NCBI GenBank assembly: GCA_965240325.2
Contig: OZ251226.1
Coordinates: 2,790,001 to 2,854,000, forward strand
DNA: 64,000 nucleotides
Source: Rebecca billardiae RCC1528
Taxonomy: Eukaryota; Protista; Haptophyta
Reading direction: 5' to 3'
The notes below the pieces were generated by a model. It was not told where the DNA came from. It saw only the letters and a list, made by a program, of their open reading frames with translations, and did no database searches. Of the stretch, positions 29,082 to 35,784 are shown in pieces. The translations under genes were made by a program, and so were the position numbers. How positions within the stretch are numbered: position 1 is the stretch's first letter; the number at the start of each line of letters is the position of its first letter.

Positions 29082-29708
29082 CTACGGCATGCTCGTATAC
29101 AGGTCGCAGAACTCGTCAAAAGAAATCGAGCCATTCCCGTCGGTGTCGAATTTGTCGAACATCTTGCTCAGCTCGGAGCCATCGAAGGAGTACCCGAGCG
29201 ATGTGAAGAGGTCCCCGAGCTCGGAGGCGTCGATCACGCCGTTGCCATCGCGATCGACCGAGCCGAAGGCCCGTCGCAGCCGGTCGCTGCTCGACTGCGT
29301 GTCCCGCGTAGGGCTCCTGCTCGCCAGCTGCTGAAGTTGGCTGTTGAGTGCAGCCTCCTCCACCGCATCCAGGGCGGCCTGCACGGAGTCGAGCGCCGCC
29401 TCGAGAGAAGCTGCTCTCTGCACAGCCGCGGCGGCATCGCTGCGCAGCTGCGTGAGCTCGTCCGCTGGCCCAGACGCCAGGCGCACCAGCTCTGCGAGCC
29501 GCTCGGCGAGCGCGGTGCTCTCTGATGCAACCGACTGCGCCTCCGCGACGAATGTCTCCTTGGCGCGCTCAAAGTCGGTGAGGCTCATGCACGCGCCACT
29601 ACGAAAGCCGCGGACGTGGTGCCACGTGAGCGCCGATGCACCCCTGACAGACACGACTGGGCCGAGGCCCGCCACCACGAGGACGGCCGCAGCGAGCAAC
29701 ACAGCCAT
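29082..29708 (-). CDS. EF-hand pair protein with a coiled coil and bipartite targeting leader
   Basis: DRDGNGVIDASE and DTDGNGSISFDE loops, plus an N-terminal signal peptide. Confidence 0.85.
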   Translation of the reverse strand: MAVLLAAAVLVVAGLGPVVSVRGASALTWHHVRGFRSGACMSLTDFERAKETFVAEAQSVASESTALAERLAELVRLASGPADELTQLRSDAAAAVQRAASLEAALDSVQAALDAVEEAALNSQLQQLASRSPTRDTQSSSDRLRRAFGSVDRDGNGVIDASELGDLFTSLGYSFDGSELSKMFDKFDTDGNGSISFDEFCDLYTSMP

Positions 29709-30275: not shown

Positions 30276-33200
30276 TTACATAGTGGAGAGGACGTCGCTG
30301 ACGGCCGGGCGCTGCAGCTTGAGCCCGCCGCGCGAGTCCATCAGCTCGCCGTCCACCTCCCACCGCGCCGGGCTCGCGGCGGGGTAGAAGGTGATCGCGC
30401 GCTCATACTCGCCGTACGGCAACCCCGGGTGCACCTCCTCTGTGCGGTGCAGCCAGCGCAGGCTGAGCCAGAGGTACCCCTTGCGGTCCGCGCGGTAGTG
30501 CAGCTTCTTGGCGCCCCGGATGCGGCCCGCTGCGCGCGCACGCGCCAGCCGGAGGGCCGCGCGGCGGGCGGGGTGTGATGCAGCGCGCGCGCGCGCGGTG
30601 TGAGCGAGCGAGCAGCGTGCGCGCGCGCGCGCCGCCGCTCCGCCCGGCGCGCCGCGAGCGCTTACCCTTGGAGCGCGCCCTGAGCCTGACCCTGTGCTCG
30701 GCCACCCAGCGCGCCAGCCGCTTGCTGCTCTTGCCCAGCCGCACCTGCGGACGCGCGCGCGGGTGCGCGGGTGCGCGCGCGCGAGGGCGGCGGCTGAGCA
30801 CGCGCCGGCGCCCGCGTGCGCGCGAGCAGCCCGCCCGCCCGCGTGCGCGCGCGCGCGCGCCGCAGGCTCCCACCTCTGTGACGGCGTGGCACCAGTCGCC
30901 ATCCTCCGAGCGCACCGCGCCGGGCGGCAGGCCGGACGCGGCCGCGTCCGACTCGGTGCCGTTGTGCGCGACGCAGAGCAGCGCGATGCGCACGTGCCGC
31001 ACGCCCATCGCGCGCAGCACGGCGGCGAGTGCCACCGCAAAGTCGGAGGGCGTCGCCTTGAAGCCAGGCAGCACGCCCTCCTGCGCGGCCGGCGGCGGCG
31101 CGCGCTGCGGCTGCTGCGGCTTCTGCTGCTTGGGCGCGGGCGCGTCCTTGTGCGCGGCCATCATCTGACTCGCGCGGAAGCGGCCCAGGGCGGGGAGCAG
31201 CGGGCCCGGCTCGGCGGGCGCCGCGGTGCCCTTCGCGCCATCGCTCGCGTTCGCGCCGCCCGGGCCGCCGTCCGCGCCGCCGCCCTGCGCCGCGCTGATC
31301 GCGGCGGCGGCCTCGGCGAGCGCGGCCTCGGCCAGCCATCTGCGGTGTGCGCGCACGCCCGACCGCACCATCTCGACGCGCTCGCGCGGCACCGCGTCCT
31401 GCTCCACGCCCGCCATCTTGAAGAGCTCCTTGAGCACCTCGCGCTCGGACATGTGCGCGGGCACGTCGAACCCGCCCAGCGACGCGTTCACGTGCGCCTC
31501 GATGGCCGTGCGCGCGCGCTCCTCGCGCGCCGCCATGCGCTCGAGCGCGCGCCGCGCGCGCTCGACGTCGCGAGCGCCGCGCGCGCCGCCTCGCGCGCCG
31601 GCTCGGCTGCTGCTCTCGGCCTCCTCCTCCTCCTCGTCCACGTCCACCACCTCGAGGAGCTCCTCCTCCTCCTTCTCCGCCGCCGCCGCCGAGCTGGGCG
31701 CCGCCGCGCCGCCGCTCGGGGAAGCGCCATCGGCGTCGGCGCCGGCAGTGTGCGCAGCCGGCTCGCTCTCAGGCCGAGGCGGCCGCGGCGCGTCGCTCGG
31801 CTCGGAGGCGGCGGCGGCGCCGTCTGGCTGCTCGGACGCGCCGCCCTCCGTGTCGCCCGCGCCCTGCGCGCCCTCCGAGCGCGTGCCCTCCTCCCCCTCC
31901 TGCGCCTCGCCCCCCTCCTCCGCCTCGTCCTCGGCCTCGGCCGCCGCCGCGGCAGTCGGGTCGATCAGCTCGCGCAGTGCCGTGAGCGCCTTCTGAACAG
32001 TCGCCTGCCTGCGGTGCTCCTTCACAGAGTCGAAGAGCAGCGCGAGCGAGCGGTTGCGCAGCGGCGGCTCGGCCAGCGTGTCGTTCCAGCTGGGAGCGCC
32101 CGCGCCCGCGCCCGCCTCCGCGCCGCCGGCTGCGCCGGGCGGCTGCGCCACCGGCTGCTGCGCGCGCTTGGCGCTAACCCCGAGCCAGCGCAGCAGCGTG
32201 CTGTGCAGCTGCAGGTCTGTGGCGTTCTGCGTCTCGTTGGCGTCGAGCGCGCCGAGCAGGTCGAAGACGAAGGCCTGCACGACGGTGCGCTCTGTGAAGT
32301 TGAACGCGCCCGGCGGCACCAGCGGCGTCGGCGGCGGCGTCGGCGGCGTCGGCGGCGGCGGCACGTCGGCGGCGGCCTCGGCTGCGGACGCGTCCGCGCA
32401 CACCGACGGCTCACCGCTCGGCCCGACGCACGCGCGGACCGTTGGCTCGTCGGGCGGCGCGCGCGCGGGCGTCGCGCTCGGCGGCGCGGCGGGCGCGGCG
32501 GCGCCGGCCTCCTCCGCGGCGCGCGCGCTGAGCACCTCGAGCAGCCCGCTCAGCGCCGACGCGCGGATCCGCTCCGCCATGCCGCGCCGCGCCTCGCCGA
32601 TCCTCGCGACCACAAACGGGCGGTGCTGCTCCGGCACTGCGCCCAGCCCGCCCTCCACCTCCGCGGACGCGAGGAGCTCCTCGAGCACCTGCTCGTCGGA
32701 GAGCTCGGCCGGCACGGTGAACGAGCACACCGTCGCGTTGAGCACGCGCGCCACGTCCGCCGGCTCGAGCAGCCCGAGCGGGTCGAAGCGCAGCGCGTCG
32801 AGCAGCTCGGACGAGCGCACGCCGACCGAGCCGGCGGCGTCGGAGCCCGGCGCGCCGTCCGCCGAGCCCGACGCGTCAGTGCCGGCTCCGTCGGCGTCGG
32901 CGTCGCTCGGCGCGGGCGCATCCGCGCCCGGCGCGTCTCCGCGCGCGCCCTCTTCCGCCTTCTGCGCGGCGTCGGCGTCGGCGCCGTGCTGCGCGTCGTG
33001 CTGCGCGCCGCCGTCGGGCGCTGCGCCCTCCCCGCTCTCCCCGAGCGGCCTCTCCTCCGTGCGCAGACGCTCAGCGAGGCCCTTGAACGCGCGCAGCGCC
33101 TCCTTGGCGACCGCCTGGTGGTGCCGGTGCTCGGAGACCACCTCGAGCAGCGCGCGCATCGCCGGGTGCTCCTCCCGCCCGCCGTCCGCACCCGCCGCCG

Positions 33201-34611
33201 CCTCGGCGCCGTCCCCGCCCTCGCGCGCCGCGTCGCCGCCTGCGGCCGCGCCGGCGGGTGTCGCGTGCAGCAGGCCGGGCACTTCCTTCAGCTCGTCGCC
33301 CAGCACGGTCTCGAGGACCTCCCTGTCGCTCATCTCGTCGGGCACGTCGTACTGGCCGAGCGTGTCGACCAGCGTGGCCTGCATCGAGGCGAGCAGCTCG
33401 TCGGTCTCGAGCTCGTCGCGCTCCGCGTCCGACTTGGCGCGCGCGGCGAGTGAGGCGGACGCGGAGATGCCCGAGCTCATCGCCGGCTTGGCGGACGGGC
33501 GGCGCGCCTTCTGCTTCGCGGCCCACAGGGTGGAGAGCTCCTCGAAGGCGTACAGGATGTCGGCCGCCGAGGCGGCCTTGGCGGCGCCGGGCTCGACGCC
33601 GCCCTCCAGCTCCGTCGCGTTCGCCTCGGCCGAGGCGTTCGCACCGGACGCGCCGCCCTCCGCCGTGCGCAGCGCGCGCGCCGCCAGCTCCTGCACGGCC
33701 GAGCCGTTGGCCGCAGAGATGCCGGCGCCTCCGCCCTGCTCGGCCGGCGCGACGGGGACGAAGGGCGGCGGCTCGGCGCCCTCCACCTCCATCGCCCAGC
33801 GCAGCTGCGCCGCCTGCGCGGCGAATCGCGCCTCGTCCCGCCCGACGAACGCGCCGCGCGAGATGTGCCACCCCACCAGCCCGATGGCGAGTGCGCCGAG
33901 CAGCGCGCCGCGCCGCCCGTCGGCCGAGAGGCCGCGCGCGCGCGCGCCGGGCGCGCCGTCGGCGGCGGGCGCGCCGTCGGCGGCGGGCGCGGAGGCGGCC
34001 AGCGCGGACGCCGACGCCGCCGCGCCCTCCGCCGGCCCGACGTCCACGTCGTCCCGCAGCATGTCGACGAAGCAGCCCGCGCCCAGGCCGAGCAGCGGGG
34101 GCAGCGCCGCCGGCATCCCCATCACGATCGCGACCGCGGCGACCGACCACCAGGGCAGCTGCAGCGCGGAGGTGCGCAGCGGGCCGAAGACCTCGATGGG
34201 CTGCGCCGGCTCCGACATCGAGTAGAGGTGCATCACGAAGAAGACCAGCGGCGTGCACAGGAAGGGCTGCTCGAACTCGGGCAGCGCGTACGCGCCCAGC
34301 AGCATGGCCGCCAGGCCGCCCAGCAGCGTGGCGGCGTAGTGGTGCACGCGGCCCGCGTAGAAGCCGGTCTCGAGAAGCGCCGAGAAGTGCGACAGGAAGT
34401 ACATGTGCATCATGAACGTCATGCTCAGCCCGTCATGATAGGCGAACGCGGTGAGCAGCCGCCACGGCTGGCCGCCGCCGAGCGCGAGCGGGAAGCTGAG
34501 CGCAAGGTCGGAGGGCGCGGCGTGGCGCATCGTGACCGCCGCGGACACGCCGACGCATGCGACCGTCAGGCCCAGCGTGAACGGCGGCAGCTCCGCGATC
34601 TTGATCGGCAT
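30276..34611 (-). CDS. Giant Derlin fusion (~1356 aa): DER1 domain, extra TM, acidic repeat region and transglutaminase-like C-terminus; exons 34611-30874, 30744-30666, 30529-30276
   Basis: Derlin motifs LPPFT, QPWRLLTAF, MYFLSHFSALLE.GFY, FL...LVFFV and LPW. Exon 1 is a continuous 3738-nt frame. Two GT-AG introns join in frame. Confidence 0.8.
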
Positions 34612-34842: not shown

Positions 34843-35784
34843 ATGCTGCCGGCCCCCCGCGACGAGTGCTCGCCCCCGGCGGCAGTCTCGGGCGATGGAG
34901 TGAGCGAGAGCAATCACGACAGCGCGGCAGACGTGTCGCCATTCATCCTCTTGCGCGAGGACGAGCTGCGCGCCGTCATCGCCGCCGTTGACGAGGAGGA
35001 GCACCTGTACATCTCGCTGGCGTGCAAGTTGCTGCGCAGGGTCGTGCGCGCCCATCACAGCGGCCGATCGCTCATCACGCCAGTCTCGACGGCGCTCGAG
35101 ACGGCCTCGCGCGTTGTATTTGCCGAGAGGCTGGGCTGCCCGCTGGACGCATGCGTCGCCGCGGCCGCCGCGAGCGGCAACACGAGCGCGCTCGCCTTGC
35201 TGCGCGACCGGCATGGCTGCGTGCTCGACGAGATGACATGCGTCGCGGCGGCCGCGGCGGGGAACGTCGAGTCGCTCGCGTGGCTGCACGAGCAGAAGGT
35301 GCCCTGGGACGACCGCACGTGGCACGCCGCTGCCGCTGGCGGGCACGTCGAGGCGCTCCAGTTTGCGCGCGCGTACCGGCTGCACCTGCTGGACGTCGAG
35401 GGCTGCGACCGCGCGGCGGGCGGCGGCCACCTCGCCGCTCTGGCGTGGCTGCGCAGCATCGGCTGCCCGTGGGGCGTGTTCACGGGCATCGCCGCTGCGA
35501 GCGGGGGGCACGCGCAGATCCTGCGCTGGCTCCACGCGCATGGCTTCATGTGGTGGGGTGTCGCGACGTTTGAGGCGGCTGCGCGCTCGGGCTCGCTCGA
35601 GGCTGTGCGCACGCTGACGGACATCGGCTGCCCGTGCGGGCTGAGCGCACGGCGCGCGGCGGCCGAGTGCGGGCACGACGAGATCGTCGCGTGGCTCGAT
35701 GCGGGACGCCATGGCGGGGAGGCCGCTGCGCCACCCGCCGTGCAGCAGCCGCTGCCGCTGCTGGGCGTGCACGCATTGGAATGA
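34843..35784 (+). CDS. Ankyrin-repeat protein of the giant-virus-like GCPW type, with an F-box-like N-terminus
   Basis: Repeats of AAxxGHxxxLxWLxxxGCPW. N-terminal LYISLACKLLR. Confidence 0.85.
   Translation: MLPAPRDECSPPAAVSGDGVSESNHDSAADVSPFILLREDELRAVIAAVDEEEHLYISLACKLLRRVVRAHHSGRSLITPVSTALETASRVVFAERLGCPLDACVAAAAASGNTSALALLRDRHGCVLDEMTCVAAAAAGNVESLAWLHEQKVPWDDRTWHAAAAGGHVEALQFARAYRLHLLDVEGCDRAAGGGHLAALAWLRSIGCPWGVFTGIAAASGGHAQILRWLHAHGFMWWGVATFEAAARSGSLEAVRTLTDIGCPCGLSARRAAAECGHDEIVAWLDAGRHGGEAAAPPAVQQPLPLLGVHALE

Follow-up and report, generated by a model that had tools for sequence, protein, structure and literature searches.

Derlins are Der1-like rhomboid pseudoproteases (PF04511; Der1 and Dfm1 in yeast, Derlin-1, -2, and -3 in humans) with six transmembrane (TM) helices and both termini in the cytosol, as seen in the cryo-electron microscopy structures of Der1 and Derlin-1. 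The known members are about 200 to 270 amino acids (aa) long and end in a short cytosolic tail (the solved chains have 226 to 267 aa and 211 aa). To our knowledge, how luminal substrates are handed over to Derlin and Hrd1 in endoplasmic reticulum (ER)-associated degradation (ERAD) is still debated, and the receptors are separate proteins in all systems studied. Derlins also serve plastid import in SELMA, the symbiont-specific ERAD-like machinery, and surveys of haptophytes and other CASH algae (cryptophytes, alveolates, stramenopiles, and haptophytes) credit them with the host proteins e_Der1 and e_Dfm1 and the symbiont proteins s_Der1 and s_Dfm1 only, with no mention of a long Derlin (PMC12412216, PMC5756292). 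The Derlins of SELMA have the usual length and are equipped with a bipartite targeting signal (PMC12412216). Here, we describe a gene for a giant Derlin of 1356 aa in a 64,000-nt stretch of the genome of the haptophyte Rebecca billardiae RCC1528 (contig OZ251226.1, positions 2,790,001 to 2,854,000; this whole stretch is called the window, and position 1 is its first letter). The protein shares with known Derlins an N-terminal region of ~190 aa with the WR, LE(T)G, and GxxxG-type motifs and without GxSG, but it adds a seventh TM helix (TM7) and ~1100 residues that are predicted to be extracytosolic. This combination of a Derlin, a seventh helix, and a putative luminal arm is unprecedented, as it was in no paper or curated family that we found, and a full-text literature search pairing Derlin with transglutaminase-like returned nothing relevant.

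The Derlin domain, the seventh helix, and the arm

A full-length search with the window protein returned a single relative, P0001, on a 4408-nt contig from JGI (L001) whose sequence looks like that of a transcript in which a single AT-rich intron was retained. In the 90% cluster of P0001 there are two full-length, transcript-derived orthologues from Pavlovales sp. CCMP2436, P0042 of 1306 aa and P0040 of 1339 aa, both on JGI contigs, together with the NCBI entry KAJ1618466.1 (P0037), a "Der1-like family-domain-containing protein" of the same alga. The model of the latter is cut at 359 aa (...AAAQWGPRQV) and misses ~950 residues, the whole transglutaminase-like domain described below among them; therefore, the giant-Derlin family is invisible to database searches by architecture. 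P0042 and the window protein align collinearly over the entire length, Met1 and the final residue included, with 54% identity over the aligned columns, 61% in the Derlin domain, 68 to 70% in the arm modules, and 63% in the C-terminal domain. A full-length profile also found P0065 (1152 aa), a single intronless open reading frame (ORF) of 3459 nt on a 45-kb metagenome contig, with the same order of parts: a divergent Derlin, a basic cluster, a TM helix, a sequon-rich arm, and the same C-terminal domain. The arrangement was seen again in P0022/P0043 and in one genomic locus on a 267-kb contig (L002). These distant relatives (P0065 and P0022/P0043) have only 28 to 29% identity and keep the order of the parts. 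By sequence comparison, at least two divergent subfamilies share the giant-Derlin architecture, and the full-length orthologous transcripts, together with the intronless 1152-aa genomic ORF, establish that a single gene encodes a single protein, as a first sequence-only reading of this DNA had proposed.

The Pfam model PF04511 (DER1) matched aa 8 to 186 against profile positions 1 to 174 of 191 (E 5.7e-20, 72.5 bits; cutoff, 26.6). As seen in a collinear alignment, residues 19 to 164 correspond to residues 22 to 167 of human Derlin-1, including the WR loop motif and LETG. The match to Derlin-1 had an E value of 4e-5 with the single sequence and of 3e-6 with a giant-Derlin profile; the match to yeast Der1 had an E value of 0.023 with the single sequence, and the profile did not report yeast Der1 at an E value of ≤1. 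These values hint at a Derlin domain of the Dfm1/Derlin-1 type. The WR motif is invariant in six giant Derlins, and the last Derlin helix contains GLGAG at aa 176 to 180, of which G177-A178, in the GxxxG-type motif, is invariant across the giant Derlins. A motif scan of aa 1 to 190 found no GxSG rhomboid serine motif, and the rhomboid Pfam model reached only an E value of 0.21 on the Derlin part. A word-indexed search with aa 1 to 238 (Derlin plus linker) gave no match and was uninformative, since Ala-rich words probably swamped the query. Judged by its sequence, the N-terminal region of ~190 aa is a genuine Der1-like domain and probably a rhomboid pseudoprotease.

A Kyte-Doolittle scan located TM7 in the same frame (Table 1), and directly N-terminal of it lies an Arg/Lys-rich cluster that is kept in all full-length members. 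Since a six-TM Derlin has cytosolic ends and TM7 follows the basic cluster, the whole arm would be placed in the lumen. No Asn occurs in aa 1 to 250, and all 12 Asn after TM7 are in N-x-S/T sequons, where ~1.2 would be expected (S+T fraction, 0.097); none of 20,000 composition-preserving shuffles reached 12. The orthologue has 14 of its 21 Asn in sequons, a number that was likewise reached in 0 of 20,000 shuffles, and the distant members P0043 and P0065 have 12 of 25 and 11 of 21, respectively (expectations for the full-length members are ~1 to 4). At 9 or 10 of the 12 sequon sites of the window protein, the orthologue also has a sequon; one of these sites is N1217, within the C-terminal domain. 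The whole protein has 0.5% Cys, with conserved pairs at C728/C738 in the arm and at C1213/C1241 in the C-terminal domain, the latter family-wide and bracketing a variable loop. These features suggest an arm that is luminal, N-glycosylated, with its sequons under selection, and disulfide bonded. In a GC-rich genome, Asn (AAY codons) is rare, which is probably why essentially only selected, glycosylated Asn survive. The sequence-only reading had recognized the Derlin domain, the extra hydrophobic helix in the same frame, and the sequons at all 12 downstream Asn, and all three were borne out by the profile match and Derlin-1 collinearity, the hydrophobicity scan, and the shuffles; its luminal, glycosylated arm is supported by the sequon statistics, the conserved sites, the Cys pairs, and the basic cluster before TM7.

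The arm is made up of three to four copies of a ~75-aa three-helix module set between low-complexity spacers. The module consists of a helix, the motif [FY]-D-V-P-x-x-M-S-D-x-E-V-L-x-E-L, a short link, and an H-R-containing helix. A hidden Markov model (HMM) trained on the final arm block, M4, as it occurs in nine family members detected the pattern in the window protein (Table 1) and likewise in P0042, P0043, and P0065. As seen in an AlphaFold model of the orthologue, M4 forms three helices, with a predicted local distance difference test score (pLDDT) of 82 to 94. The Ala/Gly/Glu/Pro spacers between the conserved arm blocks vary in length between orthologues. For the arm modules, no match beyond noise was obtained in Pfam, and none was obtained in NCBIfam. 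One of the spacers in P0040 contains a 33-residue Gln/His-rich insertion (YSQQQQQQQQQQQHRQQHRQHLQLHHHQHHDKQ) that is without counterpart in P0042 and is either an alternative exon or an in-frame intron that was retained. Comparable in-frame introns could hide in the low-complexity spacers of the window protein, e.g., at aa 530 to 596 and aa 896 to 960.

The C-terminal domain and transglutaminase-like folds

An HMMER search with the last 148 residues of the orthologue against 1.84 billion representative sequences gave 35 matches, and the domain was C-terminal in all of them. The longer ones also bear arm modules, suggesting that proteins of this kind, in fragmentary form, account for most of the matches. 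Three subfamilies were distinguished, with the His strand reading CHAVxEVRLG in subfamily A (the window, Pavlovales, P0005, and P0007), CRTVxEVRLG in subfamily B (P0022, P0065, and others), which has an extra Cys pair, and CQxFTEVRLG in subfamily C (including a Chrysotila/Pleurochrysis protein), which also reads GGDGNxFA... and WLNLDW. A metagenome scan for subfamily C yielded three contigs of 1.2 to 2.2 kb, which, like L004 and L005, are too short to reveal linkage to a Derlin.

The fold was tested on AlphaFold2 (AF2) models of the relatives P0005 and P0042 rather than on the window's own spliced domain. A model of P0005 residues 312 to 486, built from a 22-sequence family alignment, had a pLDDT of 82.5 and a predicted TM-score (pTM) of 0.74, with a helix, a strand, a disordered variable loop, a strand, a helix, a hairpin, and three more strands in that order; a second model, of P0042 residues 985 to 1306, had a pLDDT of 73.7. 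When the P0005 model was used for a shape search of the ESM Atlas, the top rows were all PF01841 (Transglut_core), with TM-scores of 0.55 to 0.59 over 115 to 125 residues and a root mean square deviation of ~3 Å, and the P0042 model again led to Transglut_core and to Peptidase_C93 clusters. The exhaustive VIA alignment against the PDB reached a best Z score of only 4.6, with a top 40 of mostly transglutaminase- or papain-like folds, including protein 4.2, LapG, TG2, TG3, factor XIII, TglA, NTAQ1, protein-glutaminases, PeiW/PeiP, XPC/Rad4, PNGase, vasohibins, and arylamine N-acetyltransferases. The nearest neighbors by language-model embedding (0.82 to 0.87), taken as leads only, were the CEP76 peptidase-like domain, Transglut_core, DUF553, and vasohibin. 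PF01841 did not match the window or the orthologue domain, and it gave subthreshold matches to the subfamily C members P0031 and P0033 (E 0.014 to 0.018, 16 bits against a cutoff of 23), for which single-sequence PDB searches returned no match. Overall, these results make it very probable that the C-terminal domain adopts a transglutaminase-like fold.

The register of the catalytic triad was set from the motifs C-x-[DE]-[FW]-A, H-A-[WV]-x-E-V, and W-x-x-x-D and from the secondary structure of the models, without side-chain superposition. In this register, Pro1188 stands at the nucleophile position, where the orthologue likewise has Pro, P0005 has Leu, subfamily B has Ser, and subfamily C has Gly. 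His1242 occupies the position of the His (Arg in B and Gln in C), and Arg1297 occupies that of the Asp (Thr/Ser in B and Asp in C). A complete Cys-His-Asp triad was found in no family member, suggesting that the whole family is pseudoenzymatic. The nearly invariant residues form a different signature, R-x-D-x-x-G-[YF]-x-W-L-x-L ... P-G ... G, plus the Cys pair. Judging from the alignments, His1242 is a lineage-specific remnant; a role as a conserved functional residue was rejected, because the other two subfamilies have Arg or Gln at this position. Thus, the fold with a broken triad that had been proposed from the letters alone is supported by the Atlas matches, the VIA list, and the subthreshold PF01841 matches of the two relatives, and the replacement of Cys and Asp stood, whereas the retained His holds for the window's subfamily and not as a conserved functional residue.

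Among the transglutaminase-like pseudoenzymes, protein 4.2, the transglutaminase domain of Rad4/XPC, and the peptidase-like domain of CEP76 share with the modeled domain the order of the core elements (Cys-position helix, strand, His-position strand, and Asp-position hairpin) and the loss of a working triad. These proteins are cytosolic or nuclear. The window domain differs in lying below the PF01841 threshold, in having a ~20-residue helix of its own inserted after the His strand and before the Asp hairpin, a variable loop closed by the Cys pair, and its own invariant signature, and in bearing a sequon, and it is probably extracytosolic. PNGase (Png1/NGLY1), which has an intact Cys-His-Asp triad and is cytosolic, shares the superfamily fold and has a conceptual tie to Derlin-dependent ERAD; in contrast, the window domain is without the Cys and the Asp and appears to be luminal, given the sequon at N1217 and the internal Cys pair. 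The link to PNGase that had been raised before was not borne out, and a specific relationship was rejected, since its Z score of 3.4 (rank 20 in VIA) was no better than that of a dozen other transglutaminase-fold proteins.

Gene structure and neighborhood

The minus-strand frame of the giant Derlin is stop-free from the ATG at 34611 down to 30403, and two canonical GT-AG introns give a spliced coding sequence (CDS) of 4071 nt. The in-frame splice product reads ...CHAVTE/VRLGKSS...RARSK/AGRIRGAKKLHYRAD...LSTM-stop, and the split codon at the junction of exons 2 and 3 gives RARSK/(A)GRIRGAKKLHYRAD...VLSTM-stop. The splice junctions match the transcript-derived P0042, P0040, and contig L001 residue for residue, and the start MPIRVAELPP is found in L001, 20 nt from its 5' end. 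The sequence-only reading was right about the spliced C terminus, and its gene extent is corrected here to 34611-30276, with a first intron that is in frame. Because this intron has no stop, the raw ORF runs through it into Arg/Ala-rich nonsense. The GC content of the window is 62 to 82% per 2 kb, and 77 to 79% over the Derlin locus, so that stop-free frames are abundant on all six frames.

Table 1. Features of the giant-Derlin gene and protein (positions in the window)
Feature	Position	Strand	Basis
Whole gene, 3-exon CDS, 1356-aa giant Derlin	30276..34611	-	ORF and splice reconstruction; full-length collinearity with orthologue P0042
Exon 1 (aa 1-1246)	30874..34611	-	Unbroken frame; ATG at 34611 matches orthologue transcript start
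Intron 1, 129 nt, GT..AG, in frame, stop-free	30745..30873	-	Missing from orthologue mRNA, where CHAVTEVRLGK is contiguous
Exon 2 (VRLGKSSKRLARWVAEHRVRLRARSK + 1 nt), helix inserted 3' of the His strand	30666..30744	-	Helix in both AF2 models
Intron 2, 136 nt, GTAAG..CAG, phase 1	30530..30665	-	Junction reproduces the orthologue's ...KAKFGGRIRGAKELHF
Exon 3 (GRIRGAKKLHYRADRKGYLWLSLRW...VLSTM), stop TAA at 30278-30276	30276..30529	-	Carries nearly invariant family residues D1287, G1290, W1293, L1294, L1296, P1307, and G1308
Derlin (Der1-like rhomboid pseudoprotease) domain, aa 8-186	34054..34590	-	Pfam PF04511
WR motif, W50-R51	34464-34459	-	Aligned to Derlin-1 WR
Low-complexity linker, aa 187-234, ending in basic cluster RARG..GRRG; predicted cytosolic	33910..34053	-	Six-TM topology and positive-inside rule
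Extra (seventh) TM helix, aa 235-251, GALLGALAIGLVGWHIS	33859..33909	-	Hydrophobicity peak at equivalent place in all full-length members
Predicted luminal arm, aa 252-1185: Ala/Gly/Glu-rich linkers, 11 of 12 sequons, Cys pair C728/C738	31057..33858	-	
Module M1, aa 408-502: helix, YDVPDEMSDREVL, insertion, HR-helix	33106..33390	-	M4-built HMM, aa 408-436, independent E value (iE) 1.4e-7; motif listing
Module M2, aa 616-684: VLNATVCSFTVPAELSDEQVL...	32560..32766	-	M4-built HMM, iE 1.1e-8; 70% identical to orthologue
Divergent module M3, aa ~770-880: FNFTERTVVQAFVFDLL ... NRSLALLFDSVKEHRRQ	31972..32304	-	Second half only, weak: aa 853-876, iE 0.15; conserved block in orthologue
Module M4, aa 1025-1102: HVNASLGGFDVPAHMSEREVLKEL...HRRWL	31306..31539	-	HMM, iE 3e-33, with M4 itself in the training set
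Predicted transglutaminase-like pseudoenzyme domain, aa ~1186-1356 (spliced); Cys pair C1213/C1241, sequon N1217	30279..31056	-	AF2 models of relatives, Atlas, VIA, alignments

Both introns of the gene are extremely GC rich, (GCGC)n-like, and Arg/Ala-coding in every frame, and ORF-based gene calling in this genome may be expected to read through such introns frequently. Within the retained AT-rich intron of the orthologous contig (L001:3491-3708), the beginning of the following exon is nearly duplicated (aggtgtgcggcatgtgcgtctagctgtcttgtgc at ~3621 versus gcgtgcggcatgtgcggctagctgtcttctgc at ~3710). This near-copy ends in a stop after ~20 codons (GVRHVRLAVLCEAATYSDKYCN followed by the stop) and could be a decoy or alternative terminal exon, giving an isoform without the transglutaminase-like sheet.

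A divergent ORF of 313 aa (window positions 34843-35784, plus strand) lies ~230 bp from the Derlin ATG and encodes an ankyrin-like repeat protein with repeated units of the form G-G-H-x-x-A-L-x-W-L-x-x-x-G-C-P-W. The short distance suggests a shared promoter region and argues that the minus-strand frame upstream of 34611 is noncoding. Downstream (29082-29708, minus strand), a 208-aa protein has a hydrophobic N-terminal segment of the anchor or signal type (MAVLLAAAVLVVAGLG), a coiled region, and a C terminus with the EF-hand-like loops DRDGNGVIDASE and DTDGNGSISFDE, and it is possibly a luminal or secreted Ca-binding protein beside the giant Derlin.

Proposed function and competing explanations

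We favor, with a probability of roughly 0.5, the reading that the window protein is an ER-type (host endomembrane) Derlin that acquired a built-in luminal receptor or scaffold, its function being proposed from these data. The dead transglutaminase-like domain and the helical modules would together make up a platform for binding, which a flexible, glycosylated tether would hold over the lateral gate of the Derlin. This platform may capture luminal clients or dock luminal partners of the Hrd3/SEL1L-Yos9/OS-9 type, and the local concentration of what is captured would be raised at the membrane-thinning half-channel, leading to retrotranslocation. That the C-terminal domain delivers substrate to its own Derlin, as the sequence-only reading proposed, is pure inference. 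The likeness to Hrd3/SEL1L with Yos9/OS-9 is one of proposed role only, by analogy, i.e., a platform in the lumen from which clients reach the Hrd1-Derlin retrotranslocon; the window protein has no Sel1 repeats, no MRH lectin domain, and no sequence or fold similarity to these proteins, and its platform is covalently part of the Derlin.

Several points weigh against a receptor-bearing ER Derlin. Its ER residence, as opposed to a later compartment, and its ERAD role are putative, as is any ligand of its C-terminal domain, and the topology and glycosylation of the arm are read from the protein sequence. In addition, Foldseek returned no match against the PDB at an E value of ≤0.001, and when PDB sequences were searched with a profile of the domain, the sole match was a chance one, EVRMGK in the ribosomal protein uL16 (E 0.2). 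Since the matches to the PDB are weak, the fold call comes mainly from comparisons of predicted models, and these are models of relatives.

The competing explanation that carries most weight, although it is unlikely, is that of a structural or adhesive glycoprotein in which the Derlin fold is a mere anchor. Such a protein would reside after the ER, in the Golgi, in a scale or body vesicle, or at the surface, where the modules and the dead transglutaminase-like domain would bind matrix or scale. The mucin-like make-up, with repeat modules, acidic and Ala/Gly-rich variable spacers, many sequons, and Cys pairs, would suit this role. So would a predicted cytosolic linker (aa 187 to 234) that, read by eye against the orthologue, has no SHP-type p97-binding box conserved between the two, and so would the divergent Derlin domains of subfamily B, which fall below the Pfam cutoff (E 5e-4 and 1.6e-3). 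Nevertheless, WR and GxxxG, which are important for Derlin function, are invariant in both subfamilies, and the Derlin domain, at 61% identity, is among the best-conserved parts, which a plain anchor would not need.

Less likely again is a role in plastid import, in which the protein would be either a periplastid Derlin or a host Derlin of the chloroplast ER (cER) membrane whose arm reaches across the cER lumen to the periplastid membrane and passes preproteins on to SELMA. The alga has a plastid bounded by four membranes, and the window protein, like the symbiont Derlins (sDer1-1/sDer1-2 and s_Der1/s_Dfm1), is a Derlin paralogue that comes on top of the host pair used in ERAD. All family members seen so far come from haptophyte-like algae or marine environmental sequences. 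In these algae, the periplastid membrane is in direct contact with the ER lumen (PMC5756292, PMC12412216), and the preference of the Derlin profile for the Derlin-1/Dfm1 type over yeast Der1 agrees with the type to which haptophyte symbiont Derlins are said to belong (PMC5756292). A flexible tether of ~1100 aa may also be long enough to bridge the lumen. However, only 8 residues precede Derlin TM1 in the window protein, and P0042 and P0065 begin in the same way, which leaves no room for a bipartite presequence of the SELMA type (judged by position, without a predictor). Therefore, the SELMA or import role that the sequence-only reading had considered is disfavored. The giant luminal extension likewise sets the window protein apart from the SELMA Derlins, its predicted heavy N-glycosylation and disulfides would fit the ER lumen and not the periplastid compartment, and the published surveys of CASH-alga Derlins list only the four proteins named above.

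A two-gene artefact, with a Derlin and a downstream region joined by a stop-free GC-rich frame and with sequons as a by-product of Asn depletion, is highly improbable and was rejected: long stop-free frames do occur on all six frames at this GC content and the NCBI orthologue model does end at 359 aa, but independent transcript contigs run from the Derlin through ...SILSAM in one frame, the distant relatives keep the order of the parts, conservation comes in blocks in the coding frame, and Asn depletion explains neither the invariable Ser/Thr at +2 nor the positional conservation of the sites.

If the receptor-bearing Derlin is taken one step further, the protein could be a single-chain receptor-retrotranslocon in haptophytes, acting either as a self-sufficient branch of ERAD for luminal substrates (ERAD-L) or as a bridge across the chloroplast-ER lumen that feeds plastid preproteins to SELMA; we regard this as possible and rather doubtful. 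If true, a luminal domain would be an intrinsic part of a Derlin for the first time, and the protein would offer a handle for trapping Derlin clients and for asking how substrates get to the lateral gate. The conserved fusion of a Derlin and a platform leads to the prediction that it is enough, for function, to have a receptor close to the Derlin gate, and the arm could be used experimentally as bait, with stoichiometry and orientation fixed by the fusion. With the window protein, the dead transglutaminase-like domains would also gain a new, extracytosolic branch, and a helical repeat of ~75 aa would be newly defined. Finally, the giant Derlin would be a fifth Derlin type in algae credited with two host and two symbiont Derlins, which bears on the evolution of both ERAD and SELMA.

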